From Macrostomum lignano (lineage: Eukaryota): 64,000 nucleotides of DNA. Below the pieces are notes generated by a model. It did no database searches, was not told where the DNA came from, and saw nothing but the letters and a program-made list of their open reading frames with translations. The number at the start of each line of letters is the position of its first letter. The stretch's first letter is position 1. Where the stretch lies: the NCBI GenBank assembly GCA_002269645.1, contig NIVC01000012.1, forward strand, positions 620,001 to 684,000, given 5' to 3'. The position numbers and the translations under genes were made by a program. This document shows positions 1,435 to 52,696 of the stretch, one piece after another.

Positions 1435-1669
1435 TTTCGAGACTTGATTTTGTTCATCGTTTGGCAAGGAACAACTTTTGCACTTATATATTTAATGCAG
1501 AAAAAATATCAGATAAACTTATCGAACCCGTGTAGTCCGGCAGTTTTCTTAGTGCTTTCCGTGTTGCAATCTAAATTTACCTGTTGCAGTTAATTTTAGC
1601 TGGAAATACTTACGAGTACTGCGCGTGTCTAATGTGCTTATGCTACTGCAACAGGCCGACATATTTTTA

Positions 1670-2345: not shown

Positions 2346-2400
2346 GCTGCATGAAGTTTTCAGTCAGAGTGGTTATTGAAAGCAGTTCTATTAGCTCGAT

Positions 2401-5815: not shown

Positions 5816-8800
5816 ATGGCAGGGGTAAGTTTCTATGCTTCTATATGATGCTTTCCTAGATCAAGTTTGTAGTTCAGGTAGCATTAGATCCGTTGCATTG
5901 GGCTCAAAATGTATTCCGGTTATCATTTTTTCGAGTTTCATTGGAATCAGCATTTATCCAGTTTGTTGATCAAGTTGTTGAGTTGCATTGGACTCAAAAT
6001 GTCTTCAGTTTGTTGATTAAGTTGTTGAGTTGCATTGGACTCAAAATGTCTTCAGTTTTTTGATCAAGTTGTTGAGTTGCATTGGACTCAAAATGTCTTC
6101 AGTTTGTAGATCAAGCTGTTGAGTTGCATTGGACTCAAAATGTCTTCAGTTTGTAGATCAAGTTGTTGAGTTGCATTGGACTCAAAATGTCTTCAGTTTG
6201 TCGATCAAGTTGTTGAGTTGCATTGGACTCAAAATGTCTTCAGTTTGTAGATCAAGCTGTTGAGTTGCATTGGACTCAAAATGTCTTCAGTTTGTAGATC
6301 GTAGATCAAGTTGTTGAGTTCCATTACACTCAAAGTTTCATCAGTTAGTAGATTGTAGATCAAGTTGTTGAGCTGCATCAGACTCAAAATGTCTTCAGTT
6401 TGTAGATCAAGTAGTGCTTCGATAGAAACTTGAGTATATTCAGTCTCTAACTAAATAATACGATGCAACAATTTCGTCAGCCAAGTCTTAGCTAAGTAGC
6501 TTTTGTCATTGATGACGCTCCACTGTTTTTCAATCCCCAAACAGCTCAAAGGAATCTTCCTGCTGACGGTAGTCACTCTGGCGCTACTAACCGAATATTC
6601 GTCGGCGGTTTCGCCAACCAAGCTCTGTCCAAAAAGCTACACAAAGAAAGGAAAATGCATGAAGGAGCGCCGGGTCACCACTACGGTGCACTACGGCTAC
6701 GACCGCACGAGCGGCAACTGCGTCAAGCGTGAATCGCGGGTTGCACGCCGCTGCGGCCTTGGTAAGCTGCTGGAAATTGTTGCTGAATCGAACAAAATGC
6801 ATCGTTAACGACTCTGTAGCATTATAGGTTACTGGGACCAATAGTTCGCCAACACTTTGATTGCATGAATTTTTCTCTATGCCCATTGCAGACTCCGAGT
6901 CTGCGTGCCGATGCTACATCAGCGGCGATCCGCACTACGTCTCGTTCGACGGCCAGAACATGCACTTCTTCGGCAAGTGCACCTACGTTCTAACCAAGCC
7001 GGTCAGCGGGGCGAGCAAAGGCTGCAGATGGAGCATCTTGGGCAAGAACCGCATGCGCGGCGGCAGTCCCTACACCTACCTGGAGGAGCTCATCGTCAAC
7101 ATCAACGGGAAGGCCTACCGGCTGTCCCAGAAGCGGCGCCTCTACATCGGCAAGGTGTTCCACGGGCTGCCTTATCGCGTCCACAAACCGGATGTGATGG
7201 TGCAGTACATGGGCAACAAGATCGTGCTCCACTCCAGGCAGTGCGGAATCCGCGTCTCCTTTGACGGCGACGCCGAGGCCATCATTAAGGTGCAGGCCAG
7301 GTACCGCAACAAGCTGTCTGGTATCTGCGGCAACTGCGACGGCAAGCGGAATGACCTAAGGTGAGTTGATGTCATTGAAACGCGACGCAAAAGTTAATTG
7401 CCGGCAACACTTGTTGGATCCGATGAAAGCGATGAACTGCACACTTCAAGTAACAACGCTCGTAGCTAAATTTTGTCCTAAATCTATTTTTTACTCTTGC
7501 AGCCTCGTCTCTTCCCTTACTTTTCTATTCTGATCCACGATTATGAGGATACGTTAGTTTACCTGTATGTATGATTTAGCATGCTAAAGCTTGCATCAAT
7601 ACTACTGGCTTTATTATCGTTCGCTTTCAGAACTGCGTCTGGTCGCAACGTGAGCGGAATGAAGAACAAGTTCACCCTGATCGGCAACTCCTACCTGGCT
7701 CCCGGCACCTCGAAATCCTGCAGCGGCCCGAACTCTGTCCGGTGCAGCTCCGCCCAGATGTCCAAAGCCATGAAGGCCTGCAAAAGTCTCATCAACTCCG
7801 CCTCCCCGTTCCGTCGGTGCATGAAGAATGGCGGCCTTAGCCTGGACAGATACTACACGTGAGTCAGGGGAATTTTCAAATTCAGAGCTAGACAAATGGA
7901 TAGACAGATGGAAATAACTCAAGTTTGTTTAGAGATGTAGAAAAGCTGTCGCCCACGTCGGATTGCTGTACGGGTATGATGCTGATGAGGGCTAACCTTG
8001 CAGACACCAAGTGTGTCCGTGTCTGGTGACAAGAAAGTCATAGCCGATGTGCACCTCTTGTGAGTGTATGACTGCCGACGTATTCGCGTGTGTGTGTTCG
8101 GGGCTCAGGGGTCAGAGGGATGGGCATGGCTATGGCTGCGGGTCTACTATCATCTTGATTTCCAGATAGTGCCTGAAGCTGTCTAGAAAACTTTGTCATT
8201 GAAATATTAACAGTTGTCGAGAAAGGCAAATAACAGCATGGTTTTACTATAATCACTTACGACATGAATATGCGTAGACCCACCAGTCCAAATACTTTCC
8301 AAACTCTGCTTCTTCAGCGACTGCATGCAGGACATGTGCGCCGCTTCGCACTTCGCCCGGAAATCGCTGATCCGCGAGGCCCGCTGCCAGAGCTACGCCG
8401 CTGCCGCCGAGATCTGCGCCAGCAAAGGCTTCCCCAGCAAGGACTGGCGCAGCGCAGCGGGCTGCCCGCTTCGCTGCCCGAGCGGAATGCGCTACGAGTC
8501 CAACAGGAAGACCTGTCAGAAGACCTGCGAGAGCTTGTTCTTCGGCGTCAACTCTTGTCCGCAAATGCGCAGCGAGGGCTGCTTCTGCAAGCCCGGCCTC
8601 GTGCTGGACGGTAACCTGTGCGTCAAGAAGGAGGACTGTCGCTGTCTCCGTGAGTGTTGCACTGTCTACTGATATAGTAGTACTGTTGGGCGTGATTTTC
8701 TATCGTTGATGATAGATTATAGCCAGCTTCAACGATAGCTTTATAGGTAGATTGTAGTTAGCTTCAATGATTCAGATTGGCTCTTGACTGTTGTATTTAT

Positions 8801-11800
8801 ACTGTACAATCACATACATGTAGTAACGAATCGGAGTTGGAAATTGCATAGTATGAAGTTAGCCTGAAAAAATATGTGACTAATTAATGTTCGTCTCAAG
8901 TTAAACTATTCTTCTCTTTGCAGAATGCGCCGATCTTCGCAGCCCGTCAGACTGCGCCAGCTGGAAGTTAAAGGGCCGGTGCAGCAGCGAGCCGGAGGTG
9001 ATGTACAAGTACTGTCGGCTCACTTGCAACATGTGTCAGAAGCGTAAGTTTCAGTGTCAATGCTGTTAACCTGTAGCTATGGCTTGGTTTCGGATCTTAA
9101 ACTTTGATTTAAAATTTTGTCCAAACAGACAAATGCGTCGATCTGATCGCCACCAACACCTGTCTGGAGAAAAAACGAGCAGGAAAATGCGAGGACAGCT
9201 TCTACAAGGAGTTCTGCGGACTCACCTGTCATTGGAAGTCGTGCCAGTGTCCGGAAGAAGGCAGTCACTACGATCGAGGCAACTGCGAGTCTCCGCGAAT
9301 GGTTCGAAAAGTTACCAAGACAACCGTTTTCAGGTCCGTTGTCTCGGGAGTCTGCACAAAGTCTTCGGTGTTCTACTATGAACCCTGCGGAGGTAAGTCT
9401 TGCAGTGCTGTCAATGAATTCAATGAGAAGAATTATTATTTAAGGGAATCTTGCATACATCAGGGGCCGGGAAACTTTTTTACTTAAGGGCTAGATAAAG
9501 AATTCAGCTCATGACTGCGAGTCAGGTGAGAAAGGAAAGGCGAGAAATAGAATATGAGAGATAAGAGAGGCGATAGATAGGATCAGAGAAGAGATAAGAG
9601 AGCAGATAAGAGGATGGAAGAGGTGAGAGAGGAGAGGGGAGAGGAGCGAGGGGAGAGAGGAGAGAGAAGAGGGGGATTGAGAGAGGAGAAGAGAGAAAAA
9701 TAGCTGAGACAAACCTTGAGCGGGCCCCGTGAGGGCCCAGAGCACAGAGAGCACAGAGACTGTACTCTGTGTGAGCGTGTGGATGAGTGCGTGCTCGCAA
9801 ACAGTATTGGCGTGCTTGTACGAGCGTATGTGCTCAGGAGCCAGCGGACTGGGCAGAATTGTCTCAGCACTGGTTGTGGGCGTTGTGCCAAGTTGCTCAC
9901 TGCATTCCTGAAACATTTAATTTTATTTTACTTTCCCAGATTGCGAGGTGATCAACAAGGTAGTAGAGAAGAAACCGTGTAACTATTGCACCGGACAGCG
10001 GGTGATGGAGAAGATCAAACAGCACCGCGTTGGCATCTATTGCACCCGGAAGGTCAAAGAGTTTACCAAGGACTGCACTTGCGCCTTCCGTAACGGCAAG
10101 GTGAAATATCTGCACTCCGTCAAATGCAAAAATAACCACACGAAGGTGTTCATGTACAGAGAGAAGCGAGTCAGCAAGGACTGCAAGCGCTGCGACCTGG
10201 TCAAGTCTAACAAGGTGAAGCGAATCAAGTGCCAGTCGCCGCCGCCCACCTACAACCCATCGGACAAGTGCCCTCGCGGCTCCAACAGCCAGTCAACGTA
10301 CACCCGCACTATTTGTCGAGTGGTACCCGTGGATTGCGCCTGTTCAAAGAGCTGCCACAGTAAGACATTCGATTGTAGCTGCGGCTGCCTTGACCCTATC
10401 GGTCAGGATGAGTGCGAAATCTCGCGCCGCTGCGACCGTGTCGGCAAGCGCCTGGTGATCCGTTACAAGGCGGAGATTCTGGTCAAGGACAAGTACGGCG
10501 ACGGCGTTTGCACCAAAAAGTCGCCTATCGTGCACTCGGAAAAGAGACGTAGGTGCAATATTTGCCTTTTTGAAGCTCCCTTATTCTGCAAAATGTTTCC
10601 GGTTGCCTTACTACAATCTTATTTATTACCTTGACTATAAGCCCTTGACCATAGGAAAAAATATTAAATTTTCCACATTGAATGTTGTTAATAATATACC
10701 TCGAAGACATTTAGATTCTTCTTTTATACATTGTGTAATGTGTAACACTTTTTCTGAAAGAAAATATGTTTAAAATAGTTATGAGCAGCAGCACTAAGAC
10801 TTGACGTTTGCTCCTAATTGCTTTCAGCCTGCAACTACAAACGCATTGCCTATTACACCTGCGACAAGGACAAGTCGGGCAAGCTGATTGGCTGCCCAAC
10901 TACCAAGGACAAAAACTGGCCGCCCCGATGGTACAACTACAAGGAAGGCTATCTAGACGACGACTGCAACTGCAAGACTAAAAACGCGAAGAAGGTGTAC
11001 CAAGACAACTACTGCTGTTGTCCAAAGCCGTACGTCATTCGCGAGCCGAATGAGGAGTACGGCACTGGAAAGTGCGAGAAGGCCGAATCTCACTATCGCA
11101 TGCTGGTTGTGCGGATCTCCTACGTGCACAACTCGGAAAGTGGAGAGTGCGTCAAGCAGAAGTCCGAATGGTACGAGGTGTGCCGATGCGACGATAAGCC
11201 CGAACGGGAGGAGTGCATCGACAAGCCGAACTACGGCCTGTTCGTACGATACCGACCGCACTGCAAATTGGTCGACGCGAACACGTCCAACGCTCGCTGC
11301 GAATGCGGCGAGACGCTCAAATCGCGAAAAGTCTACTGCCGAAAGGCGCCGCGCTATCTTCAGCGCAAGGGCAAGTGCGACATCAAACGCGGCCGAGCAA
11401 TCTACCGCCGGGTGTACAAGGAGATCACCTACCGCAAGAAGTGCGCCTGCCGAACACGAGTTGAGCCAGAGCTGGAGCCTTGCAAGGAATGCGTTCCAAA
11501 GGAGAATAAGGAGTTGATTCCGTGTCCAAAGAACTGCGAAAACAAGATGGGACGCTGCTCTGTGAACTGCAAGAAGTATTACGTCACTTACTTTTACTCG
11601 TGGAATGACGTAAGCAAGACATGCGTCGCACGTGAGGTGAACCGAATTCCATCGCGTTGCTGCTGCAAGCCGTACTACAGGTAAAGTTTCAATTAACCTG
11701 TTTTAATATTTCTAAAGCTACTGAACAGAGAATAATCGCAAGCTTTAGTTCGAAAATGGAAGCTGGATATGATGAGTGCACGCTCGTGAAATAATAGAAT

Positions 11801-14800
11801 TGAAAAGGTCCGCCCGTTATTGACTAGCGGTTGTATATGGCCTGGAGCTTAGCTTTTGGTTCCCTTCCGGTGCCAAAGTTAAGATCCCTAATTTTTGTTT
11901 TGCTGTCCCTCTAAGGCTGAGTGAGACCTAAAGAGATGAGATTTTCGCTGGTTCTAGACTCTCTAGACCCATAATCAGGCTTCAATTTTTATTAACTCTA
12001 GCATTCATAGCATACGTGTTGCTCGATTTTTATCCATTACAGGCCACCAAACGGACCTGGTACCGACGAAAAGCAAGAGGTCGGACCGGTTTGCCACGAG
12101 TCTGGCAAGTACTGGAAGTACTACATCAACCGACAGTACCTGTGCGGTAAAAAATACAAGAAGTGCTGCCGCAAGCGTATAAAGCGATTGGTACCGATTC
12201 CCTGCAAGACTGGAAGACGAAAAAAAGTTGTCCACTGCTCGGATGGTAAAAACATCAAGAAGTTTGTGCTGACAAGAGTCTTTCTTAAAGACTGCAAATG
12301 TCAAAAGCGAGTCCGAGTCAAGCCGTGCAAGTGTCGCTGTCCGAAATCCAAGTCCTTTGTGAAATGCGAGCACGAGACCAACACGTACGCCCACGTGCAC
12401 ATCTATTACGTGATTCGCAACTGCCGATGCCACAAGCAGGTGAACACCAAGCGAAGGCGAGAGCCATGCGAGGTGACCCGCCGACGGGAGGTGTTCAACA
12501 ATTACGACGCCTGTATGTCTGGAAAAACGTCGGGCTTTATGTATACACGAAAGTTCAGCCGGTTCTACATGAAAAACTGCGTTTGTAAAGAGCAGAAGCT
12601 TGAAAAAATCAAATGCCACTGCAGTAAGTAAAAATTTCTAGACAGTTTTTTTATTTTCTTGTGGCTTCTTTTAAAATTAATTGTTAGCACGTAATGGTTA
12701 GTAGACTACGAGCGTAAATGAGTCTTTTTAATTTAATTAAGCGACCTATTGCTAATAACTACAGAGTGCCCCAAGAAGACCACCAAAACCAAGGAACGAT
12801 GCAACGGTATGACTGGTTACCTGGAGTGGACGGTGACGAAGCAGAAGAAGTCAGGCTGTCTGTGCAAGCCGAAAACTTATAAGAGAAAGCGAGAGTTCAG
12901 TAAGTTTGCAAAATAAAAGGAAGTTTTTTGTTATGGACGTTTTTGATCATTTAAAAATAGAAATTACACAAAACACCAACCTTTGCAACAATTCAGCTTG
13001 TCCAACGCAGAGAGATCGAATCGAAGTTAGCTGTAACAAGAAGACTGGCATCCGAATCACAACTCAGTTTAACTTTCGTCGTATTGACGGAACCTGCCGA
13101 TGCGGCTGGGTGAAGGTGGACGAGCGAGAGGACCGCTGCAGTACGTGTTTGCGATCGAATAATTAATTGGTTTTGCAATTGTTCTTCATTTGCGCATTAT
13201 TCAATTCTTAACCAAATTCGAATGCAGATTGTGACCTCGAGAACATTAAGATTCAACCAACCAACAAGCACAACGAGAAGCACCCGGCCTGCCGACACAA
13301 CCGCTGGTACTACGAGACGTTCGAGTACTACATCACAGTTCGCGACGGTCTGTCCGTCTGCGTCAAACGCAGCATGGCAGGCGGCAGTGACGTGCCCTGC
13401 AATCGCGACGAGAGCGTCCTGCCTGTGGGCCGGTGCAACACTCGCACAAGGCGACAGCGCTACCAGAAAATTTGGTTCGAACTGCGTGCGTGCCACTGCA
13501 CTAAACGGTCTTCTTACTTCTTCAAGCCATGCGGCTGCCCCAAGGACAAGCCGCAGAAGCGCAGAAAGGTCGACCACGAGTGCGACGGCCAAGGAAACTG
13601 GATTCTTACCTGGGAGTTCTATAGGTGGAACGAGAAATCACAGGTGTGCGAGAGGGAAGAAGAGAAGCAGACTCGTTCAGTCACTTGCAAGCCAGAGAAA
13701 AAGCAAGTGTCCAAGACCGACTGCTACAAAGGTCACTACCAAGTCACGATTCACACTAGCAAGGTTGTCGAATCCAAATGTACCTGCAAAACGGACGAGA
13801 AGATCACTGTTCTGCCGTGCGGTGAGTGACAATATCCTCTGATGGCTACAAGAGGTTAAAAGTAAGGCATTTTAAACTAACAGAAATATTAATTAGTTAA
13901 AAAACTTTGTCTTGGTTACAGTGTGCCAAACCATCACTCGAACTGGCAAGCACTGTCACGAGGACCCCAAGACGTTGCACTCTTACCGAAAAATCACTAC
14001 CATTATTCGTAAATGGAATGACAAAAAAGAGCGCTGCGAAGTTGACAAAAAAATCGTTGAAAGGCGAATTTGCAGTAAGTATTCATTGTTTTCTTTAATC
14101 TGACTATTAGTTGCACTGATTCAAATCAATTAACTTTCTGCATTTGACAGAATGTCGCAAGCGCATTTTGGCGAAGCCCGACTGCAAAGACGGAAACTGG
14201 ATAACAAAAATCACGAAGTTCGTCATGGAGCTTAACAAAAACGGCGATCGAGTCTGCACTGAAGTGGAAAAGTTCAGATCTAAGCCGAAAAGTGAGTAGA
14301 TAAAATATAAAAATTAAACAGGTCATCCTTCTAATGTGCATCTCTTGCAAACGTTTTTGTTTACAGTCTGCAACGATCAGGTTAGATTCGAGACAACAAA
14401 GAACAAGTGCAAGAACCGTCGCACTGACACCATCTACTACTCGACGAAGAAAGATGTCCTGAAACGAGCCGATTGTACCTGTGTCGAGCGCGAGATCAAG
14501 CGCAAGCCGTGCAAGTGCTGGTGCTCCGACAGGCAAGTCTTCAAATATTCCCGTTGCCAGGACGACAAAGTGACGATTAGCTACTATGCTGTCGAACGCC
14601 TTGAGGGCTGCAAATGTGTGAAGCGCCAAATTAAGAAAATGAAGACCCTATCTTGCAAGAAAGACATCGTTAAGAGAACAAGAGGCCCGTGTAACAGACG
14701 TAACAAATGCACCAGACCCATTTTTGGCTGGGTGAATGAGGAAAAGAATTGCCAGTGCGTGCCGCGAAAGTTGCCTGAGCCCATTGGTCACGAGAAGTGC

Positions 14801-17800
14801 GACTGTTGCAAGAAGTCACGCGAGATTGGCGAGTGGTTCTGCAAGAATAAAATTTATTATCGCTATATTATTACGCGAACATGGAAGCCTGAAAAGAAGA
14901 AGTGCCTCGTCGTCAAAACAAAGGAGGCAAAGGGAGTACAGTGCCCTCCAATCAACCCGAAGAAACGTTTTGTGTACACGAAGTGCAAGAAATACCGTCG
15001 AGTTAAATACAGCTTGCACATGTACTTGAATCCCGATACCTGCGCCTGCGAAACGAAAAGAGAATTTGTCGCCGTTGTTTGGTGCCAATGTCCACCGACC
15101 AAAAAGGAGGAGATTTGCCGCAAAGACAAATTCTTGGTAACCAAAGTGACTGTATACACTCTTCGTGGCGAAAATTGTGAAAAGTCCAAGTCCTACTCAC
15201 CGCCAGTTCGCGTGCCCTGCGTCAAGCCTCCCAATAAACCCGACGGTCGCGGTGGTAAGATGAACTGCTTGCGCATTCGGTACATTCCGTATGCCAAGGT
15301 CATTGGGTGCAAGTGCCACCGAGGCTACAAAGAGGAGATGGAGGAGTACACCACAGGAGTTTGGTGCTGCAAGCACAGACCGGAGTGCAAAGACGTTAGC
15401 AAGCCTTACTGTGACAAGAAGTCTAATACTTGGTTCTCCACTGTCAGCAAGTGCGTCATCGTTAACAAGCAGTGCGTCCGACGCACATCCGAGAAGAGTG
15501 GCTTGGCCGTCAGTAAGTAGAGCAACAAATATTGATTTCATGGTCAGTTATTCGTACTAATAAAAAAGTGCATTAAGTGACAATTTTCGGATTCTCCCCT
15601 TTCAGCTTGTTCTAGCAAGCCCATTGGCAAGCCAAGCGTGTCCTGCGATCAGAAGACCAAGATCGAAGTTACAACCACAAAGTACGAGAAACCGCGCAAC
15701 TGCGAGTGCCACACCTACACAGTGACAACTACGAGTGTGTGCGGCTGCAACCCGCCGCTGAAGTTCATCAAGAATAAGGGCGGCTACTGCCACAACGATG
15801 ACACTTGGGTTGAAGAAATCGTGCAAAAAACGTGGAGACCAAAGCAGAAGATCTGTCAAGAAACTGTTATTGACCGTCGCCAAAAAAAGATCGGTATGCT
15901 ACAAGCTTATCGATTAGTTATCTCAATTAGTACGCCTCATATAGATCTTAACTTGATCGGTCATTCTCATTGACCAATGAAACTTTTAGAGTGCGTCACG
16001 AAGCCTGTCCGAACAATTCTCAAAACACGCAACGGCAAGGTCTGCTTCCGTCGAGCTGGCTATCGATTTCGAGTGCGGAACGTCGAACTGAAGTACTACG
16101 ATGCTAAGAACTGTAAGTGCGTTGTTGTACGCAAAAAGATCGTCCAGGAAAAGTGTGACTGTCCTGAGGATGAAGTCAAGCTTGGAAAATGCGATGAACA
16201 GAAAACCTGCATGCGAAACAAAGTCACCGTGTCCTACAGAGCCCAGACCGATAATAAAGGAAACATGAACTGTGTGCCAAAGTCAAAAACTGAGAAGTTG
16301 CGCTGCTGCTGCAATGAGAGGCCAACAAAGTTTAAGTACTGTGACAAGGAATCAGGCCACTATGTCACCGTCATTGAAACGCACATTTTCAAGCCGGAGC
16401 TTCTTACCTGCAAAGTATCCAAGAAAAACATCGTACACCCACTTGTTAAATGCAATAAGCGATTCCCGGCTGAGAGAAGTGCATGCAAAGTAGACAAAGA
16501 AAGCGGCATCGGATACGAGACCATCACCACCCGAGTAAGGTACCTTAACAAGCCGACTTGCGAATGTGACACCAAGACAGATGTGAAGAAATACGTGTGC
16601 TGTGAGTTTCTTATACGAGCGTAGATCTTATTAAAATTGAAACACTTTAACTCAAGGTTTAAATCCCGAAAAAGCTTAAAATATTTTTTTTATTTCAGCG
16701 TGCCCGAAGTGCGGAGAATGGGAGACTTCATGCGAAAACAACATGAACGTGATGCGTCGAGTCTGCCACAAGTTGATCAAGCCCAAGTCCGGTGAGCCCT
16801 ACTGCCGGTCTCGGGACGAGAAGAGGACGGAAACCGTACCCTGCAGCAAGAAGAAGACAGTGCACAAGGGTCGAGTGCCTAAGCGTTGCGCAAAACCAGC
16901 TTATCAGATAATCACCATAAGGTCCCACCGACTTGAGGAGTGCAAATGCGTCGACAACGAGGAAACAGTTAAAAAGATTCGATGCTGCCCGAAAAAGACA
17001 TCGAAAACTGTTTGCCACTCATCGGGCAAGTATTGGGTGAAGAACATTCTAATCTGGTCGGTTGATGAAGTCAGCAACAACTGTTCAAAGAAAAAAGTGG
17101 CTAAAGTGATCGCTGTCCGTAAGTATAGTCTACTTAGTCCCTTACTTGTGCATGGAAACCGGAATTTCCTAACAATTACAACTCATTTCTAAATTTTAAC
17201 GCAATTTATTTCAGCCTGCACCAGATTCAAGCAATTTTATTCTCCATGGAGCTGCTCCTCCCACCGAAAGCGCTGCAGTCGACGGCCATTTAACTACATC
17301 GTCAAGCAGTGGTATCGCGTACGCAAATGTCACTGCAAGCTGCACAGGGAGAAGCGCTACAAAAACATGTGCTGCTGCACTAAGAAGCGCAATACAAAGA
17401 AGTGCGATTGTCTGGCTGGCAGAATCGTGACAAAGAACTTTTACGAGGTTCTGAAGACGCGCAAAAACAGGCCAAATATCTGTACACAGGCAGTTAGCAC
17501 CAAGCTTGGACCGAAAATTCGATGCCAGGAAAAGTACAAAGCCATTCCTGTGGGATCGTGTCCAAAGTACAAGTCGGGCATGAAGATTCCAATGCAGAAG
17601 TTCATCATCAGGCGCGGAAGACGCGACTGCTGCAAGTGCGTAACATCTAAAAAGACAGTTAAAAGGCCCTGCCACTGTGGCTACAAGATCCGCTATTCGG
17701 GCAGCTGCGACGATGGCGACACCTACCGACGAGTGTACCTTGTCATTGGCACCATGCGCTACGATAAAACTGGCCTACCGAGCTGCGACTACAAGAAGCA

Positions 17801-20800
17801 GATTTTCATCGGCAGGGATTACTGCAAGTGCACCCCGGATGAGGAGCACAAAGTTTTGAAGAGCAAGCGATGCGAAGGCGATAGCTTTATGTACACGTAT
17901 GAATATGAGGTGATGAAGACCAAATGTAAAAAAGTGTCTGGACAGCGCATATGCATCAACCAATGCATCAGAAAGCAGACCACCAAACGATTTCCCGTCG
18001 GTAAGTTTTATTTTGTTGGTTATTTTCCTAGCTATTTTTCCTTAAAGCCATAACACCTTAATGATGCAAATCCAGAGTGCGAATCTACTGGCCTTGTCTT
18101 CCGCGGCAACTGCATCAATCAGAAGCGAAACGTTTGCAGGCAGGTGCCTTACGTCAAAAAGTGTGTCTGCAAGCACAGAAAAGATTGCTTTAAGAAAGAA
18201 GCCTGCGGTAAGTTGCATTTTCGAAAGCAGTTATAATGTAGTAGGTCCAGCTTAGTAACAGTTTATATAATATGTTAGTGTTATTATTCTATATTAAGAG
18301 CTTTGACTTTACAATTTCAGATTGCAAAAACTCACGAAAGCACTATTGCGACGCCAAGACAAACACCAAGGTGACGAAATTCACCACCTGTACGCCCGTA
18401 AAAGATGAGTGTGTCTGCCGAGTTCGATATGACAGGAATAAGGTTGATTGCGACAAACCGAGGACAAAGCGACTCAGCGATTGCGAGGTGAAGCGCGGCT
18501 ACGCTTTCTACCACTTGGATGAAACGACCATACGTATTCCCAAAAGCTGTACTTGCGTTCCCAGAACAAGAAGGAAGTTGATTTTCTGTCGTTGCAAGAA
18601 GAGCCACAAATCGAATACTAACTGTATTGACGGTCGAATCTGGAGAAGCACGATAACTGAATACATCCATTCTGGTGGCAAGCTCGGCTGCGTCCGACGA
18701 GTCAAGGTCTCGGAAAATCCCGTCTCCTGCCCGGAGAATCCGCAGCTTGTGCCTGGAGCCCTCAACCGAAAGACCTGTACTCGAAACAATATCGTCATTT
18801 ACAACGAATTGAAGGCTTGCAAGTGCAAGAAAAAGTCAGTACACGTTAAAGCTCATGCCATTAACTGCTGCCTGCAGAGCGGCTTCAGCACGCCAGCGAG
18901 ATGCAACAAGCGCACAAACGTTTTTGTAACGGAGCACTACCGCTACGTGACTTCATTCAACGGGTACGTGTTTGAGCTCGGTAAGGTGCGCATTCCAACG
19001 TACAAATGCGTTAGGACTCTTGCTAGACGCACAAAAAAGCCGACTATCTGTCCGAAGACGAAAGTGATGGAAAGCTGTAACAACAAGGAAGGAGAAGACG
19101 GTGTTTGGACAAAAACAATTACAACCTACAGAAAGAAGGACTGTCGCTGCATTCACACAGTGAAAACTATTTCTGGCCACTGCCGGTGTCCCATCTCCTA
19201 CATTGAGAGGCGCACTAATTGTATCAACAACTTCCGCACAATTTACTGGAAAATGTACGCGAGGCGACCGGACAAGAACCACAAATGCTCGTCCAAGATT
19301 GTTCCAAAGAGGGAGCGCTGCGGTTGCAATCGTGAGGAGCGCAAAAGCAAGAAGTGCGACAAGCGCGGAAACTGGGTGACAACAATGTACTACAAAAAAT
19401 TCAACGCCAAGTTGAAGCAATGCGAACAAATTGTCAGCGTAGTCTCCGTGGTTCAAGCCCGTAAGTGACGCGTGGCAAATATTTTAATGCATGATTTATA
19501 AAATTTCAATCGCCTACCTAGAAACTCGTTGCATTGGTTGTAAAAATTTTAGAATGCAAAGAGAACCGATACGAAGTGCCACCAAAGCGTTGCAGCCGCA
19601 AGAAGACCAAGTGCGTGAAAGCGTACAGGGACGTGATTTACACCTTGAATCCCGTTAACTGCAGCTGCAAAAAGTCCGTGAAGGTCTCTAAAAAGAGACG
19701 ATGCTGTAAGTTTTTGGCAAAGAAATTGAGATACAAGCACTCGTACTTACTTTGGCATGCTTGCTCGTGCACTTAAAGATTTTTTAAAACGTATTGTGTT
19801 TTGATACTGGGCTAGCAAATTTACCGCCACCTCTGAAAGTTGAACCGGATTAGCACGCAGCTGAGTAGACTGAGCCCAAACCCTCAAAGTAGCCTTTGTG
19901 AGCGATTGGTTCCTGCGTATTTTGTTCTATTTCTATTATTTCCTTTCTGTTTCTGATTAAAAATATTTCAGGCTGCAAAAAGTCCACCAAAGAAAAGAAG
20001 TGCGTCAACAACAGGTTCTGGAAGATCAAGGCAATTAACAGCGTCCTTGATGAAGAAGAGAAGTGCGTCGATCGCGTTGACAGGTCAACCATTCCTGTGC
20101 AGTGCCCTTCGCCATACAAGATCAAGGGCGATTGCATTGGAAATCGTAAGAGCGCTGACTGTGGCTACAGGTTGGTGAATCGCATCTATTTCAAGACGGT
20201 AAAGTGCCGCTGCATTAAGCGACAGAAGACGCAAAAGACCCTCTGCAGCAACTATTGCGATCTATGCCGAAAACCACTGAAGGATGTTCGCAAGTGCAAC
20301 AAGAAGGACGGCGGAAAGACATACATCACTAAGAGCTTTGAGTACAGGCTTAAGCGAAACAAGAACTCGCCAATTTGCAGAACTGTTGTCAGCTCGACTT
20401 CGATGGAGAAAGTTGGTAAGCTTTAGTCTTTTTTGTAAGCCCTTTAGTAGAAACACTATTAGACTGAAGATCCCGTCTCAAGCTTAAAGCAACAGTACAG
20501 TTTCCAGTCAGCATTAGCTCGATTTAACTTTCAGAGTGCAATCCGTCTAGGGTGGAGAAGAGCACTTATGAGAAGTGCGGCAAAAAGACCGGATGCAAGT
20601 TCAACATTTTCTACTACAAGATGGTTCCGCGAGGCTGCAAATGCGTTCGTCAGCTGCAGCCAAAAAAGACGAGGCGCAATCTGAAGTGCAGCTGCAACTG
20701 CGAAAAGGCCCGTCACAAAGTGGAGTGCCGTCGAAACAAGTACCTCACATACATCTCCAGGACATATATTCTTAAAAATTTCCGCTGCAAAGAGAAGGTG

Positions 20801-23800
20801 GTTAAGAAGTACAAAACAGTAAGCTGCGATTCGCGACCTGACGGTTGGGTGTTCAAAAACAAGTGCGTCCGTCACTTGATGCGCTACACACCCAGAATTC
20901 GCAACTGCAAGTGCTCGTACTCTTCGCGGCGCATTAAGACCTGCAGATTTGTCGACGAGAGCTGTTGTCCGAAGCCACACCGAAAGGCAGTTTGTGTAAA
21001 GAATGATATCAGGATTTTTTACCTTTATCACTACATCCCTGGCTGCAAGTCCTGCAAGAAGGTGAAAACTGTACAGAAAACCAAGGTGAAGTGCAGCGCA
21101 CCCAAAGTAAAGCTAGTTAAGGTGTTATCTACACCGGATGGATCCGTGTGGCGGCTTTTCAAGAAAACCATCTACCGAGTCTCCAATTGCGTCTGTAAGC
21201 CAAACGATTCGTTCATCCGAATCCCGTACAAATGTCAACCACCAAAAACAATTCAGAAGAATACATGCAAGAAGACAAAGAAATCCTGTCATCCGACTAA
21301 AAACGTCTACGGAGTAATGATGAAGGTCTTCTACGGTGTCAAAACATCGTCTGGCTATCCCGACAAAAGTATGAAGTGCGAAGAGATAAATAGAATCGAA
21401 ATTCGCTATCCATGCTTGTGCATCTGCAAGAAGAAAAACAAGCTTTGTTATAAAAACAAGTACTGGAGACTCACGACAGTGAAGTATATCAAGAACTCGC
21501 GCAAGTGCGTCAGAAGAGAATCATCTAAGGTCGTTCCGGCTGAGCCGAAGTGCAGAAGGCGAGAAAGAGAATATCGTATGGAGAAGGAATGCCCAAAATC
21601 GGGCTTCTACACTATCATGCAGTCTTTCTACGTGTGGAATAACTGCGAATGCACGAAGCGAGTGATAAAGGTGGGCACTGAAATCTGCCGCTGCCAGAGG
21701 GCGATAGCAAGCGCGTTTGCAATAAGGCTGGCGACGCTTACGTCGAGTACACAACACACTATCGCTTGTGCGGAGACAAGCTGGCCTGCTGCAAGCGAAT
21801 CACGAAGAAAGAAATTCCTGTTAAATGTAAGGCCGGAATTTCCAGAAGCATTAACTGCGACCAAAAGAATCACATTGAAACGGTCACTTTCACACGCTAC
21901 GATGTTAGACGCTGCAACTGCGTTAAGCGCACGTGGACTAAGCTTCAGCCGTGCGTAACCTGCTTGCCACCGCGATGTCGCGTCGGAAAGAAGGTGAAGT
22001 GCATTGAAGGAAGAATTTGGAAAGTTCAAAAGTGGTCTTGCCATCTGTACCGCAAACCAGGTGATTGGCGCACGAAGTGCATCCAGAATCACAAGGTATT
22101 TAAGCGGACAGTTAGATGCAAGGAAGGAGTTGTTTCAAAGAAAACTAAATGCGACCCACTGACAGGAGAGCAGCTTCATCTTAAGGAAATCACACGAATT
22201 ATCAAGTGTAAATGCAAAACAAAGACAGTCACTAAAAGATGCGATTGCACACCTTGCAAGAAGACTCACACCTTCAAGAGGTGTCTGAAGCTGCCAATGC
22301 GTTGGCAGAAGACGACCGTATCCTACAGCCATAATGGCTGCAGATGCATTAAACACGTCAAACGAGAGGACATTCCAATCCCGTGCAGTGGCAAAAAGTT
22401 TATTAAGAAGAGTGGAAAATGCCTCAAGAAAAAATCTGACGGTGGTATTGTCGGGTTTAGAAAGGTTACCGCATGCCGGAAGCATCTACTGAATTGCGAA
22501 TGCACAGAGGTATGCAAGGAAGAATCAAAACTCTGCTATTGCAAAGGTGTTCTCAAAACGAAAAAATGCGTTAACGACAATACATACGTAACAACTACGA
22601 TGCGTTGGGCGATGGACAGGGCGGCCAACAGCTGCGTCTGGAGAGAGGAGAGCGTTAAGCGAAAGGTTGTCAAGCCATGTCCAAAGGAAAAAGTTGAGAG
22701 AAGCGGCTGTGTGTACAAGTCAAAAACTGGTGGAGAGAACTATCGCATTGTTAAGACCACTGGCTACAAGCATCATGAGTGCAAGTGCGTGAATAAACCA
22801 ACCAAAGTGATTCGCGAAACATGCAACTGCGATCATCGTTGGATTGTCATCAAACGCAAGAACTACGGACCAAGAGGTAACTGCAAACGCGAGTACACTC
22901 TGCGCCGATATGTCAACAAGATCAAGGACGGCAAGGTCGAATGTGTGGAGGATATTCGGATTGTCACCGACAAGCACTGCTGTTCAAAAACTAAAAAGTC
23001 CAGGTCCTGTGACAAGCAACAGTGTGTCTATGTGAATATAATTACGAGCTATGTCCTCACTGGTGCCTACAGAAAACGATTCTGCCAGAAAGCCGAGGAT
23101 CGGACTATTGACGAGCCGCCGTGCGTCAGAAACAAAAACATCAAGCGCGTCAAGACTGACCGTTCATCGTGTCGAAAGAGCAACTCAATGCGAATCTCGT
23201 ACCAGAGACAGATTTGCCGCAACTGCAAGTGCATCTACGAAGAGTACCGCTACGAAACACGGGTTTGCAGGTGCAACTATGAGCGCAAGAAGTGCAAGTG
23301 CGTGCAAAAGGGCAAGAAGCAGAAGTGTCAGCACATTTACGAGCGAATGTCGGCAGACAGGAAAAAGTGCATCCGTGTCAGGAATTCTTATCTCGTTCCG
23401 GTTTCGTGTGGAAAGCGGCCTAAAGCAGAGCGCATTTGCAACATTAGGCGAAAGGACAAGAAAGGCTACGTGGACAAGTATTACACGATTAAAAAATACT
23501 TTAGAAAATGGATTTTCAACAAAAAACGTGGTACATGCAAATGCATTTGGAAGCCTGTTGTTACTAACAGACTGTGCAAGTGTCAACCGTACAATGAGGA
23601 AAAGCCGTACGATTATCATGAGTACAGGCGTAGATGCGAGAGAGGCACCAATACCTATGTTGTATTTTACAAGAAGCGAGTCCGTCGTGGAAACGAATGC
23701 GTGGAACTGATCAAGGAGAAAAGGATTGCTGTTAAATGTCATATTAGATCTTCCTGGAGACAGATTCCTGATCCGCCTTGCCCGGCAAAGAGGGACTACA

Positions 23801-26800
23801 TCCAGCGCATTTTCGAGAAAGGCTACAAGCAAAACTGCCAGTGCAAAAAGAAGCGACGAGTCAAAGCTGCAAATGCCGATGTCCCAAGGCGACACTTAAA
23901 CAGGAGTGCTACAAGGATGCCGTTCTGGCTATTTCGAAATCATATAAGCTTGTAAACTGCCAGTGCGTACCGATCGTGAAGAGACGCATGCGAAAGATCA
24001 GCTGCCCGAAGAACTCATACCGCGTAGTGAAGGCAAAGTCACCAAAGTGTACTGAAACACGACTGAGAATTACGTTCAAAAAGACTGCCTGCACTAAATG
24101 CACAAAGAAAGTGGAAAGGAGTGTCGATCACTGGTGCTGTCCAACTTTGCCGCCAAATATGAGAGAGAAGATCGAATGTGACAAGGACAATGCCATCAAG
24201 ATCATCCGGCGTTTCACCTACAAACTGATTGGAAAAACGCATCCAAATAGAGAGTGCAAAATGACTGAAACAAAAGAAACTCAGAACGTATTTTGCGATA
24301 ATCTTAGTCGCGCAGAAAAGGTTGTTAGCTCCTGCAAGAAAAAAGAAGGCTTCACTGATCGAGTTAGAAGAGTTCGCTACTATTCTGTTTCATTCAATGG
24401 CGAAGGGTGCACCTGCGTGTGGTCACGGCACTACAGATGGGACGTCTGCGGCTGCAGGCCAGACCGCACTGTGGAATCAGCCTGCAATCACAAGACTTGC
24501 ATGCAGGACATTCTGCACTACTCGTATCGCATGGTGAAGAACTATCGCGCTAGAAATGTTTGCAAAGAATCTATTAGGCGTACTAAGCGCCGCTGCGGAT
24601 GCTGCAAGAAGGACTACTCTAAAGGTCCGGACTGTGATGGAGTACGCACCTTTTTGACGTACTATTATACATTCAGGTGGAACTACAAAACTAGGACATG
24701 CATCAAGCATCGCCGGGTCGAAAGGAAAAAGGTTGAATGCGGAGAGAGGAATGTGGTCCTGACATCTAAACCCAATCGAGCCACTTGTACGTACACCATT
24801 ACCCGCATCAGAAACTCCATAAAGAAGTGTGAGTGCAAGAAAAAGATTGTGTCAAAGAAGCCATGCTATTTCTGCTGCAGACCTAGAAAGGTTAAAACTG
24901 TACGATGCATAAATCACAACATCATTGAGACTACGGTGGCCAAAGTTGTTCCAGTTGGATGTAAGTGTCGAAAAGGCAAGACAAGAAAGACACTGAAAAC
25001 AGTTAAATGCCGAAAACGGCACGTTGTCAGATGTTACAGTCGCAATTCCCGAACCTGCAAGCAGAAATGCTGTAGATTTGAATGCAAAGTACGAAACTGT
25101 AAGAAAACGAAGCCACTCATCAGGGTTAAGTGCTGGCATCGGGTGTACAAATGCTGCAATTCTGGGCTTGGTAGAATTAAGAAGTGCGACGAAAAGAAGA
25201 GAAGGCACGTGTACACTACCAGCTGGCATGTCTGGCGCCCGTGGAGATGCGACAGGCACACGAAGACCAGAGTGCAGCCAGTGGTTTGCAACCAGCGCCT
25301 GTCTATCAATCGTGGAGCCTGTAACATTAAGGGTCGACGCTCTGGCTACCTTCAGGAGGTGAAGCGCAAGGATATTCACAGAAGAGAAGTGTATGCTGAA
25401 GGCTGTCAATGCAAGGATACAACTAAGGCGAAATACTCTATCTGCGCTTGCAAAGGATACCATGACAAGGAGGTCTGTACAGCAAACACTCTCATAACCT
25501 ATCGCCAGTCCTGGGTGATCAAGCAGCTGAGAAACGGCAACACCTATTGCTCGCCAATTACCACTGTTATTACCAGCAAAGGAACCAAGTGTAAGAAGCC
25601 CTACTATAGAAAGATTGGCACCTGCAAGAAAAATGGCATGCAGACTATTCAGTTGGTTACCGAGTACGCTGATAAGTGCGCCTGCAAGAGTACGGAAACT
25701 CAATTCGAGATGGTTTGCAGTTGTCCCAAGCCTGAGAAAGACAAGCGCTGCGAGTATGAAAGGGGCAGAATGATTACAACTGTGAAAACCTACATCAAGG
25801 TGTGCCCTAGCACGCATTCCTGTCACTGCAAGAGCTCCAAGGAAACCGTTGTCCGTGATATCAAATGCCCAAAGAAGTCGCGAACCTGCCACAAAGGCCT
25901 GGTTGTTACTATCACACACAAGCGGCATGGATGCAAGTGCATTGTAAGCACTGTTTTGTCTAATTGCGTTGTGTATTTGTGTGGCTGTATTTTCTCGATT
26001 TTAAGCATATATATAGTTTAAGTACATTTGAGCTATCCATTGTTGCGTAACAGTGCAAGTAAACGTAGGCACAAAAGCCGTCGTGCACTACAGGTCATTT
26101 TCTAGCTATCCATTTTATCCAGTCAGTACGTACTCGCATGTCATTCTAGCATACGAGTCTACTTGTAAAACCCTTGTAGCATCAAAAATGTTTAGAGTCG
26201 TAAAATAGAGACAAAGACCTACACTGCGATAGAAACAAACTGTCAAACGTTTAGATTAAAATTTGATCATACTCTTACTTTTTTATTTTTTATTTCTCAT
26301 TTATTTTTCTTATTCAACCTACCTTAATTCTAGACTCGTCGCACGGAAAAATCCGTGCCATCTTGCACCGCCTGCACCGACATCGGCGAAAACTGCTCGG
26401 AGCAGAAACGTAGAGGCTATTGCGAGACCAACAAGGAGACGAAGGAAACCTGCAAGGAGACTTGCGGCTTCTGCAACGTTAAGCCGTGCCCGAAACCGAA
26501 AGTCCTGCAGTTTAAACCTCAGCGTGGAATCAGTATTAAGTCGGATCGAAGATTCAAGCGATATTTCTACATCAAAACACTTGAGAATAGGAGAGAGTCG
26601 GCTTGCATCAGAGCTTGCAAAGAGTCTCCTATTTGTAGATCATTCGATTACGACCTGCGTTCAAAAAGCTGCGTTTTAAACAGAGTTCGAATGGACGACA
26701 TCGAGACCAGAGGCTACACATGGGATGTCAGCCAGCAGAAATCTCGATACAGCGTCCACTACAACAGGGTATGCCAGGACGAGTGCGAGTGCAAAGTGAA

Positions 26801-29800
26801 GCCTATGAACAAAGGCAAATGCGTTTGCCGCGGTACCGGTGTTGAGCGCTGGTGTGCCAGAAGATTTGCCATCCTGCAGTACCACGAGACCAACGATGGA
26901 AGATGCGTGCTTGGTGAAGATTCTAGATACGTTGTCGCTGATTGTGACGAAACTTGCGTTGATGTTGGTAAAGACTGCGCCAAGAATAAGCATCTCTGCG
27001 ATCGTGACATTGTGTTTAGCCGCCGATGCGATCGCACCTGCCGCAAGGTTTGCCGCTGCGGTGAGGACAGGAAGCAGCACTTTAAGGGTCTTTGTACGCA
27101 ACGCGCCAACGGACAATGGACCATCTACCAGAGATTTGTCAAGTACCAACGAACGGATTGCGGTTTGTGCGAAATGGCTGTTGAAGAGTCCTACATAGGG
27201 TGCACACCGGGTAAGTTCACTATTTTCAACTTATAGTCAAAATATAAACGGATACTAATCAATAAAATGCTTTTAAAATAAACTTCAGAGCCTTGTGACA
27301 AGACCCCGATCAAGGTTGTTGGTGACTGTATCAAGGGCGTGAAGCTTATTTCGATCTATTCAAGAAGGCGTCACAGGGATGGTAGCTGCCCTGTCACTCT
27401 GGTCAAAGTCATCAAGGAGGATTGCATTAAGTGCTGCAAGGAAATCATGAAGGATGTTGGTCGCTGTCAGAGGTACAAGAGCAGAGGTGGCTACTACAGA
27501 CCAGTCACTCACTCTTGGTACGTCAAGCGAAAAGGAAACTGTGAACTGAAAATGGAAGTCCGCTGGTTCCGCTGCAGCAAGATTGGTAAGTTCCAATACT
27601 CAGTAAAGTGTTAGCCTGTAGATTGAAATTTTCCTTTAAAAATGAACGCTTTGTCCCTGTTTTAAACCGAGTTAATACTGATGAGAAAGCTAAAGTAATT
27701 CGAGTCTCCTGGTCAATTTGTAGCCTGTCCTCGTGACTTCACCACTAACGGCAAGTGCGAATTCGGCCGCCGACTGACCTACAACGTCTTCTACACTGTT
27801 GATAGCGAGCGAAACTGCGTCAGACATGCGAAGGCCTACAAGACCTACTGCAAACAGAAGTCTCGACCCGAGTGCAATGATGCCTACATCGATCTGCTCT
27901 CTCCACGCCAGTGTCTGCAGATTAAGAAGAAGGGCATGTGCGTTAGAAATGAGGGTGCCAGTCTCTGCGCCAGAACATGCAACTTCTGCGTTATCAAGAA
28001 GTTCTGCACAAAGAAGATGGGCCCAGTTGACTTGGTCCTCACTGTCGATGCCTCCGACTCAACCGAGTTAGTTACATTTGAGAACTACGTTGTACCATTC
28101 TTAAGGGCGATTGTCGGAAAGATGGGTCGAACTGTTAAAGTGTCCGTCATTCAGTACGGTTCATCACCAAAGACAGTATTCAGGCTTGGTGACGAGGTGT
28201 ATCCACGCAACATGATGACGAGGATCAATCACATGGACTTAAGCGGTGGTTCCTCATACACTGCTCGGGCCTTGTATGCTGCCTCAGAAGAGTTCAGGCT
28301 GAGAGGCAGACGTGCAGCCCATAAGGTATCCATCCTAGTTACAGACGGTAGAAACAGTGGCAAAATGTTGATTAAGCCGGCAGTGAAGAGACTAAAACGC
28401 TATGCTGATACTTCCATCGTTGTTGGCATAGGACGCCACGTGAGCGAGAACGAAATGCGTCTAATTGCATCCGATTACGCCTCAGACGAAATCAGGATAT
28501 CGAACTTTAGACAGCTAGCTGGAATTGTTGACAAGGTGGTGAGAAAAATCTGTCCTAAGGGAGGCAAGCCAGTCAGGCCCAAGCCCGGACCAAAACCCGG
28601 ACCCAAGCCTGGCCCACGACCAGGACCAAAACCAGGACCGACGCCAGTACCAGGACCCAAACCGGGACCGAAACCAGGACCAAAGCCGGGACCAAAGCCA
28701 GGACCAAAGCCGGGACCAAAGCCGGGACCATCAAATGGCATTGATCTTTACTTCGTTGTTGACTCAAGCAGTTCTGTAACTTCAGATGAGTTCAACTTGA
28801 TCAAGCAATACATTAAGTCATATGTCAACTCTATCGTAGTCTCGCCAGAAGACACTAGAGTCAGTATTATTCAATACTGGGATCAAGTAACAACGACAGT
28901 CGACATCGAAGAATACAGAACCGTGAATGATCTTATCCCTGCGATTGAGAACTTGAAGTATTTCAACGGTCAAAGATCCGTTCTTGGTGATGCGCTAATC
29001 CTCACATCCAAAATGATTGCAAGGAATGAGCGAAACGTACCAAAGGTTGTTATTGTCATCGCTGGAACACCGCCAACAAACGGGGAAGCAATCAAAGACG
29101 CTGCGCCGAAGCTTATCTACTATGCTGATAAGGTTATTGCTATTGGCGTCAAGAACCACATGCCCAAGACTGAATTGCTGCTGATTTCTACTACCGTGGA
29201 GGACACTATCATTATTGAAGAGTACTCGAAACTGCACGACACCATCCCTGTTATCATCGAGAAGACCAAGATCAGCGAGCGAAAGAAGCGACCTGCTCCT
29301 GGTGGAACTGGTCAAGACATCGTGTTCATTGTGGACAGCAGTGACTCAATTGGCCAGACCAATTGGAATGTGTACATCAAGGGCCTGCTTAAAGTAATCA
29401 CTGAATACGTTGTTGTCTCACCATCAGACACTAGGTTCGCACTTATCCAGTTCTCGAAGCCAGCACAGGTTGTATTCGGCTTCAAAGACTACACTGACGG
29501 AGAAAGTCTTCGAAGGGCTATCAATAAGCTGAAGCCATACCATAGGAGCACCTACCCGTCAATCGGAAACGCACTGAAAGTTGCGGTTGACTATGTCAAG
29601 ACGAAGAAGCGTTCCGGTGTGCCAACTTCAGCCATTATTATCACTGCTAGCACTTCCTCACCCAGAGTTGGGAAGCCGATTGAAGAGGTCATCACAGAAG
29701 TCCAAGAGTTGTTCGACTACATTATCCCGGTGGCCATCCGTAACCGAGTGGACTTGCCCGACCTAGAGAAGCTTGCCAAGCCGGATTCGTCGATGATTAT

Positions 29801-52214: not shown

Positions 52215-52696
52215 GACAGAGAATCTCAGGCTCAAACTGAACTAGACTGTCGACTGTGTTGTTTATAATATCGTATGGTGGTTTTAGCTCGCGCGCTCGT
52301 GTCTTCTAAAAGCAAATGCTTTCTTGATCAAAGTAGCTCAACTATCCGTTGCTTTCGGAGTTGCAGAGTCCATAAGTAAATTTATTGATTCGTAAAATAT
52401 TATAATAGATGCTTTTGCTAATAACTATTTTTTCGTCTCTCAACGTAAACGCACTAAGCGCTGTCGATTGTATTTCCGTGCAGGAGTAAGTGAACGGCTT
52501 TTCCGCTAAGAGCAAAGCAGTAGAACTCGCGATAGAAATGTATGCTGGCAAACGGACCCTGGCACTAATACTACATATAAAGCCAAAGAAGAGCTCTCTT
52601 TTTTGTTTCTGCTCTGAGTTCGTTTCCGTTCTACTCTTATCAGGCAAAGCCAGGCGTGCTTGAGCGGCCGCGAAGGGAGGGGGTTAGTGTTATAAC

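Follow-up and report, generated by a model that had tools for sequence, protein, structure and literature searches.

What is the small Cys-rich unit that a single gene of the flatworm Macrostomum lignano repeats about a hundred times, and what could a protein built in this way be for? The gene, BOX15_Mlig026472g1, lies on contig NIVC01000012.1. We analysed a stretch of 64,000 nucleotides of this contig (positions 620,001 to 684,000 of the forward strand), which is called the window, and all coordinates below refer to it. Its bases 1-31958 match the contig in GCA_002269645.1 (assembly Mlig_3_7) with 100% identity. An earlier note, made from the DNA letters alone, had proposed ~100 copies of an unrecognised disulfide module of ~48 aa at 9250-25943. 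In our reading, to which we give a probability of roughly 0.55, the gene encodes a giant secreted protein of ~7,600 aa, and the array forms the rod at its centre. This rod would be cationic and stapled by disulfides, and would form part of a secreted polymer of the VWD/VWA type.

An array of two alternating module types

The array extends from 9248 (CQCPEEGSHYDRGNC) to the end of its last exon at 25943. It comprises 4,599 coding residues with an isoelectric point (pI) of 9.76, 24.8% Lys plus Arg (K+R) and 9.7% Cys. Thr accounts for 7.2%, Ser for 5.2%, Pro for 4.3% and Trp for 1.2%, and there are seven NxS/T sites. Dynamic programming on the Cys gaps recognised 90 modules, whose median length is 49 aa, and left ~326 aa in degenerate stretches; both together give a total of ~96 modules. 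The autocorrelation of the Cys indicator has its maxima at lags of 45-48 and 96-98.

The three modules quoted in the earlier note are found at 12755-12895, 12987-13139 and 18075-18206; in the first two, a split codon makes the initial residue differ from the quoted text. A hidden Markov model (HMM) made from these three recruited nothing, and one made from 17 modules recruited only ~18 copies, as single modules are too information-poor. Hence, we used a di-module profile and iterated it over all stop-to-stop open reading frames (ORFs) on both strands. With an independent E-value (i-E) <=1 it matched 44 domains, of which 37 also passed <=0.05, and none of them lay outside BOX15_Mlig026472g1. 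As a control, minus-strand ORFs gave 2-5 matches and shuffled copies gave 0.

Tandem Repeats Finder and an exact-seed search found no DNA-level repeats in the array except for a purine-rich microsatellite at 9557-9696, which is intronic. Among the copies, the protein identity of di-modules is 14-24%, and the Cys residues are the sole invariant positions. The array is real and non-random at these coordinates, and its copies are old. Most of what the earlier note had said thus stands: the location, the strong divergence of the DNA, a copy number that it had estimated from length, and an additional copy ahead of the VWD domain (Table 1). Six more modules are found beyond the range of the note, at 26784-27851. 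A consistent periodic alignment could be built, and it also retrieves relatives in other species.

The modules are of two types. Type A has five Cys in the arrangement C1-x(~11)-C2-x(~20)-C3-x-C4-x(~11)-C5. Type B follows one residue after type A and has three Cys, C1-x(~10)-C2-x(~21)-C3-x(~13). Both alternate and form a super-repeat of ~95 aa with eight Cys, in which the gaps 11, 19-20, 2, 11, 2, 10, 21-22 and 13 recur. The consensus of the earlier note describes the type A half; in type B there is no CxC after strand 2, and the CxC precedes the module instead. Mixed A-B and B-A units aligned under an A-B-A target were dropped, as this alignment was mis-registered.

The exon layout provides a second view of the unit. 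In the gene model, 17 of the ~19 array exons open at a C1 codon directly after a phase-1 intron, and 14 consecutive array exons have a length divisible by three. This is the classical pattern of a shuffled extracellular module, and the exon starts at C1 fix the module border independently. Across the family, 174 canonical A-B units were collected. The alignment of type A with type B by hhalign is weak (P 0.019); a common origin of the two types would thus rest on the shared predicted fold and the Cys frame, not on sequence statistics.

For the structure prediction, we chose the best-scoring A-B di-module (Table 1) and, separately, the type A module. The AlphaFold2 inputs were alignments of the window's own repeats, with 19 rows for the di-module and 21 rows for type A. 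The di-module gave a mean predicted local distance difference test score (pLDDT) of 92.6, a predicted TM-score (pTM) of 0.65 and six strands; type A alone gave a mean pLDDT of 93.0 and a pTM of 0.66. The strands are at residues 9-17, 22-33 and 36-47, followed by 59-65, 70-81 and 86-97, and the positions are identical in both runs. According to these models, the module is a three-stranded antiparallel meander in which each inter-Cys interval forms one strand and the Cys residues gather at the two ends of the sheet. An independent observation supports this topology. Throughout the family, type A modules with an additional Cys 3-6 residues behind C2 also tend to have CCC rather than CxC where A joins B (odds ratio 21, p 2e-35), and in the model both positions fall at the same end of the sheet.

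Many type A modules of relatives from cestodes, trematodes and monogeneans (P0001, P0003, P0004, P0016 and P0023) contain an extra Cys pair, with gaps of 5, 14, 2, 11, 1 and 1. They amount to a third subtype of the module, in which a further disulfide probably forms where A meets B.

When 1.84 billion representative proteins were searched exhaustively with the profile, 73 matched at E<=1e-3 and 41 at <=1e-10, with up to 52 stretches per protein. We looked up 30 match clusters, and every one that carries an organism name belongs to the Platyhelminthes; the other matches are contigs from sequencing-run and metagenome assemblies. The free-living relatives are several M. lignano paralogues. Cestodes are represented by Echinococcus granulosus (EUB62272.1), Sparganum proliferum and Dibothriocephalus latus, trematodes by Echinostoma caproni, Paragonimus kellicotti and Dicrocoelium dendriticum, and monogeneans by Cichlidogyrus casuarinus. 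The cestode, trematode and monogenean proteins have the same series of Cys gaps and the same 45/90-aa periodicity, and the relatives share the flanking ShK-PAN-ShK, VWA and VWD domains. By BLASTP, the window protein is 24.8% identical to the paralogue P0021 over 3,346 aa (E 1e-132) and 21.9% identical to the Echinococcus protein over 1,263 aa (E 4e-35). The pI of 40 tabulated family members ranges from 8.1 to 12.0. In P0003 (S. proliferum BHF74423.1), residues 3555-3689 form a C-terminal lysine-methyltransferase domain (Methyltransf_16, E 2.5e-13), which is probably a gene-model fusion with a neighbouring gene.

Word-indexed protein searches gave no match with the di-module alignment (A1) and only two further proteins with the Echinostoma homologue. 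Such an index is too insensitive for the A/B module family, and only the exhaustive profile search worked. The source names of the relatives cite only VWFA, VWFD, ShKT or CTCK domains, and the module itself therefore appears to be unannotated; EUB62272.1, for example, takes the name 'collagen alpha-3(VI) chain' from its VWA domain. The interpretation of the earlier note is supported with refinements: the unit is the A/B pair of ~95 aa, and the family is already present, unnamed, in public flatworm proteomes.

We regard it as probable that the modules constitute an undescribed domain specific to Platyhelminthes. This domain would be a basic three-stranded sheet that exists as two disulfide variants in alternation, and staples from one copy to the next would join 20 to 100 of them into a rod. 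The family of giant VWD/VWA/ShK proteins so defined would extend from Macrostomum to Echinococcus, Paragonimus, Dicrocoelium and the monogeneans. Its members could provide flatworms with a core structural material of their own, and about half of the M. lignano prototype is missing from the public protein sets.

Proposed role and competing explanations

Each ~47-aa module would be a flat three-stranded sheet with one disulfide cluster at either end. From the Cys count of five plus three per A-B pair, we infer that the junctions between the modules are stapled by disulfides, which should make the chain stiff. If the 1-3/2-4 scheme of pleiotrophin is applied to type A, C1 would pair with C3 or C4, and C2 with C5. 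In type B, C1 would pair with C3, and C2 would bond to the CxC in the following type A module and link the modules covalently. With ~4 nm per module, a rod of 96 modules would extend over a few hundred nm. Domains such as VWD-C8-TIL and VWA are known to multimerise and cross-link VWF, mucins and matrix proteins. The secreted protein could polymerise or cross-link via its terminal domains.

The cationic rod and a tail with 43% K+R would bind polyanionic (sulfated or acidic) glycans. The basicity of the array (25% K+R) resembles that of the heparin-binding, TSP1-like (TSR) domains of pleiotrophin and midkine. For Mlig-ap1, experiments have shown such binding by the K/R-rich regions, which serve as the cohesive part of the M. 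lignano glue and whose function heparin blocks (PMC6410801). Thus, Cys counts, model topology, charge and flanking domains together lead us to a stiff polycationic rod, which may serve as a cohesive, load-bearing part of flatworm extracellular material, be it glue, mucus or matrix.

Several points weigh against this proposal. The largest exon contains two frame breaks, and the full-length protein is a prediction from the gene model. The structure models were derived from internal repeats only, and both the disulfide pairs and the stiffness of the junctions are putative. The structural match to pleiotrophin described below is statistically insignificant, and generic beta-meanders, e.g., of ribosomal proteins, reach a similar TM. 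No expression, localisation or biochemical data were found for Mlig026472; the searchable literature and the supplements of M. lignano papers do not mention it, and the searchable texts mention neither its paralogues nor the Echinococcus accession. The family is also kept in cestodes, trematodes and monogeneans, which counts against a role limited to temporary adhesion. These classes are not known to have a duo-gland adhesive system. Their possession of the family suggests an extracellular structural role broader than temporary adhesion.

The same observation bears on a possible, if doubtful, alternative: the molecule would be specific to flatworms and would belong to the extracellular matrix or basement membrane of the body itself, or to reproductive structures or eggs, instead of being an externally secreted glue or mucus. 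The occurrence of the family in a free-living species and in all three parasitic classes would fit this, as would the several M. lignano paralogues and the VWA domains, to which one member owes its collagen name. The gene is also absent from the adhesive proteins that have been published for three flatworms. What it has in common with the cohesive glue protein Mlig-ap1, however, is a VWD-C8-TIL head and an extreme K/R tail.

Could the module instead be an extremely diverged TSP1 or a pleiotrophin/midkine-type repeat, and the gene a flatworm counterpart of SCO-spondin with VWD-C8-TIL and a long TSR array? We consider this unlikely. The earlier note had seen a loose resemblance to a TSP1 repeat without the WSxW ladder, and this describes the predicted three-stranded sheet fairly. 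The TSP1 motifs speak against such a repeat, however: in the 4,599 aa of the array, WxxW occurs once and CSxTCG not at all. The architecture of VWD-C8-TIL plus a repeat array and the name of one member of a paralogue's cluster, a CTCK-domain protein, fit the idea. Pleiotrophin domains consist of three antiparallel strands stabilised by disulfides, are homologous to TSR and bind heparin (PMC8955691). The spacing in the pleiotrophin C-domain, C-x9-C-x21-C-x9-C (checked in the sequence), is close to the four-Cys frame of the module.

When the single module was compared with the PDB by Foldseek, the TSR-like C-domain of pleiotrophin was the only disulfide-rich small domain among the matches. For 8voi_B, the probability was 0.85, TMq 0.55 and TMt 0.50, with a root-mean-square deviation of 3.4 A over 44 columns, 20% identity and an E of 0.99; for 2n6f, the TM was 0.52. 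Foldseek thus gave no significant structural match in the PDB. The di-module model was tried as well and matched only strands of green fluorescent protein barrels (E>=0.1, TM 0.3).

Sequence comparison gives no support to homology either. Pfam was the one domain library searched among the InterPro member databases. Its Pfam-A models (to 2025) left the modules unmatched at E<=1 in ten translations of exon-containing reading frames, in which only the flanking TIL, C8, ShK and PAN domains were recognised, and at E<=0.01 in three homologues. This includes TSP_1 (PF00090) at both thresholds, and PTN_MK_N and PTN_MK_C, which are in the scanned library, at E<=1. Alignment of the module profiles with the pleiotrophin/midkine C-domain by hhalign gave a probability of <=0.2%, and when all PDB sequences were searched with profiles of the di-module (alignment A1) and of the single module (A2), none matched at E<=10. 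Hence, the family is unrecognised, as the earlier note had put it, and the likeness to pleiotrophin appears to be architectural, whereas homology to TSR is not supported by the profile statistics.

A quite improbable explanation is that the gene is broken. Two 1-nt frame breaks lie in one exon of ~5.4 kb, both at short homopolymers. If the break at ~21698 were real, only the first ~3,700 residues and an 85-aa nonsense tail would be made, and the rest would be a decaying remnant. The public protein PAA94294.1 (3,797 aa) has this shape: it covers only 5816-21958 and ends in an 85-residue out-of-frame read-through of the first break, and no gene is called in the 10 kb after its model. With 95-96% BLAST identity, it was considered as a paralogue; this was rejected, as it represents the same locus and the differences come from the exon models.

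The assembly, Mlig_3_7, is a PacBio Canu assembly that was polished by Pilon with Illumina and RNA-seq reads, which would favour real breaks, but only 64% of its bases are error-free according to REAPR (PMC5730564). The reading frame, moreover, stays open with the module pattern after each break, for 721 codons, for 693 codons and then for ~2,400 over five more exons, and the arrays of the relatives are also trailed by a ShK-PAN-ShK cassette. In our view, the breaks are likelier to be assembly indels. Because the public model stops at the first break, ~3,850 residues are absent from the public protein sets. They comprise the ShK/PAN cassette, the VWA domains and the K/R tail as well as the final third of the array (21959-33715), and the protein collections gave no match to them. 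A word-indexed search of 5.8 billion proteins gave no match to the 757-aa exon behind the first break.

Finally, that the periodicity is a by-product of a Cys/Lys-rich composition, without a true domain, can practically be dismissed: the poor recruitment by the 3-seed and 17-seed HMMs and the weak alignment of type A with type B would be expected in this case, but the gene gave 44 domains against 0 in shuffled copies and 2-5 in minus-strand ORFs, proteins of cestodes, trematodes and monogeneans show the gap series 11, 19, 2, 11, 2, 10, 21, 13 again, the exons have their borders at C1, and AlphaFold2 reaches a pLDDT of 93.

Architecture of the gene and its neighbourhood

As modelled, BOX15_Mlig026472g1 occupies 6512..33715 on the forward strand with ~30 exons and encodes ~7,580 aa. 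The gene model was obtained by splice-aware dynamic programming with GTRAGT donors and YAG acceptors, and the introns are short and of the GTAAGT...YAG type. The N-terminal part contains a signal peptide, a Cys module, VWD, C8, TIL, ShK and a ShK-like motif ahead of the array. The array is followed by a cassette of ShK, PAN and modules, four VWA domains with a (PGPK)n linker and a K/R-rich tail (Table 1).

Table 1 Features of BOX15_Mlig026472g1, with positions in the 64,000-nucleotide window and the basis of each assignment
Feature	Position	Strand	Basis or remark
Single Cys module between signal peptide and VWD	6620..6766	+	First half of di-module HMM, i-E 3.7e-6
VWD domain, main exon	6892..7360	+	Pfam VWD, E 4e-24 on spliced N-terminus
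C8 and TIL domains	8318..8649	+	Pfam C8, TIL
ShK domain	8926-9036	+	Pfam ShK, E 1.7e-9
Second ShK-like Cys motif	9134-9229	+	By eye; Pfam gave a single ShK stretch on spliced N-terminus
Cys-module array, types A and B alternating	9248..25943	+	Cys-gap parse, profile, autocorrelation
Best-scoring A-B di-module, target of structure prediction	13389..13685	+	HMM 57.5 bits
First 1-nt frame break, between tgccgctgc and cagag, ~21698	21695..21700	+	Inside largest exon
Second 1-nt frame break, between gtcaaa and gctgc, ~23864	23862..23867	+	Same exon
Post-array cassette, overall	26373..27989	+	Pfam and Cys pattern
ShK in cassette	26373-26474	+	Pfam, E 0.0028, below Pfam gathering score
PAN in cassette	26553-26687	+	Pfam PAN_1, E 1.9e-6
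Modules in cassette	26784-26945, 27051-27203, 27294-27425, 27432-27575, 27726-27851	+	Cys pattern only
ShK-like motifs in cassette	26955-27053, 27873-27989	+	Cys pattern only
Four VWA domains	28029..30450	+	Pfam VWA, E 1.2e-88, 4 stretches
(PGPK)n linker between first and second VWA	28566-28733	+	
C-terminal K/R tail, 1,087 aa, 42.8% K+R	30456..33713	+	Composition

The tail is almost free of Cys. It holds two long repeats that are nearly identical (...SFTKVSGRPPIRIRFTMRTINGKKVRVPKTVRLGRKVV...) as well as many 14-aa units of the SRKIRFRKGKGVV type in one tandem run. It matches no Pfam family, and its pattern of W, Y, F and V suggests more than plain low complexity. Pfam did not find a CTCK cystine-knot domain in the last exon.

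Elsewhere in the window, one long ORF on the minus strand (50343-52241) belongs to a kindlin/fermitin-like gene (Pfam Kindlin_2_N 8e-32, FERM_M, PH). In another single ORF of 895 aa on the minus strand (57088-59772), ankyrin repeats at the N-terminus (Ank_2 5e-35) precede hydrophobic segments; it may encode a TRP-like channel or another ankyrin-repeat membrane protein. Exons of Ras/Rab-family small GTPases (Pfam Ras, Roc) are at 1216-1491 (-), 2395-2610 (+) and 3495-4037 (+), interleaved with tandem repeats at ~1550-1980 and ~3115-3490. A tandem repeat with a unit of 12 codons is at ~55.6-56.1 kb (55560-56106). Two kilobase-scale microsatellites, at 61041-62175 and 62903-64000, translate as (IYLS)n on opposite strands.

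Significance and comparison with known systems

What appears to be new is a small disulfide-rich beta-sheet repeat in a giant secreted protein of the VWD/VWA type. The predicted architecture of this repeat is nearest to that of the TSR-like pleiotrophin and midkine domains, and it has so far been found in flatworms only. The catalogue of domains would gain a confidently modelled extracellular module, and misleading names such as that of the E. granulosus 'collagen alpha-3(VI) chain' could be corrected. This flatworm-only giant cationic family is common to M. lignano, in which RNA interference, in situ hybridisation and transgenesis are available, and to parasites of medical and veterinary relevance. 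As a lineage-restricted, secreted and highly repetitive protein, it is a candidate for studies of flatworm matrix and adhesion and for a diagnostic marker. For biomaterials, a putative disulfide-stapled polycationic rod with VWD/VWA cross-linking domains is worth comparing with the known flatworm glues. For annotation, a single 1-nt frame break was enough to remove half of a 7,600-aa gene.

With the C-domain of pleiotrophin and midkine (2n6f, 8voi_B, 1mkc), the module shares the size of ~45-50 aa, the three Cys-bounded strands, which are predicted in our case, and the strong basicity. The spacing is C-x9-C-x21-C-x9-C in pleiotrophin and C-x10-C-x20-C-x11-13-C in the module. These cytokines are small and have two domains each, whereas ~100 modules stand in tandem here. 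They have no counterpart to the A/B alternation and the extra CxC Cys, and no detectable sequence or profile similarity to the modules.

The TSP_1 arrays of SCO-spondin are alike in the elongated three-stranded module (again predicted here), the long tandem arrays of giant secreted proteins, the phase-1 module exons and the N-terminal VWD-C8-TIL. In contrast to TSP_1, the array has no Trp ladder, no CSxTCG and no Pfam match, and the number and pattern of its Cys differ.

Mlig-ap1 and Mlig-ap2 come from the same species and are also giant secreted proteins with VWD-C8-TIL, long repeats and extreme K/R regions, for which no homologues outside flatworms were reported (PMC6410801). Their domain sets differ from that of BOX15_Mlig026472g1, and an identity with either was rejected. 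Mlig-ap1 combines 17 EGF modules with a C-type lectin domain, and Mlig-ap2 has LDLa, TSP1 and repeats of 221-255 aa; Pfam found neither lectin and EGF nor LDLa and TSP1 in our gene. The A/B module is not described for Mlig-ap1 or Mlig-ap2, and the A/B family occurs in parasitic flatworms as well.

VWF and the gel-forming mucins likewise place an N-terminal VWD-C8-TIL before a very long central repeat region. Here, however, there is only one D assembly, and no CTCK was found. Where the mucins have a Pro/Thr/Ser region for O-glycans, BOX15_Mlig026472g1 has its basic Cys/Lys-rich array.

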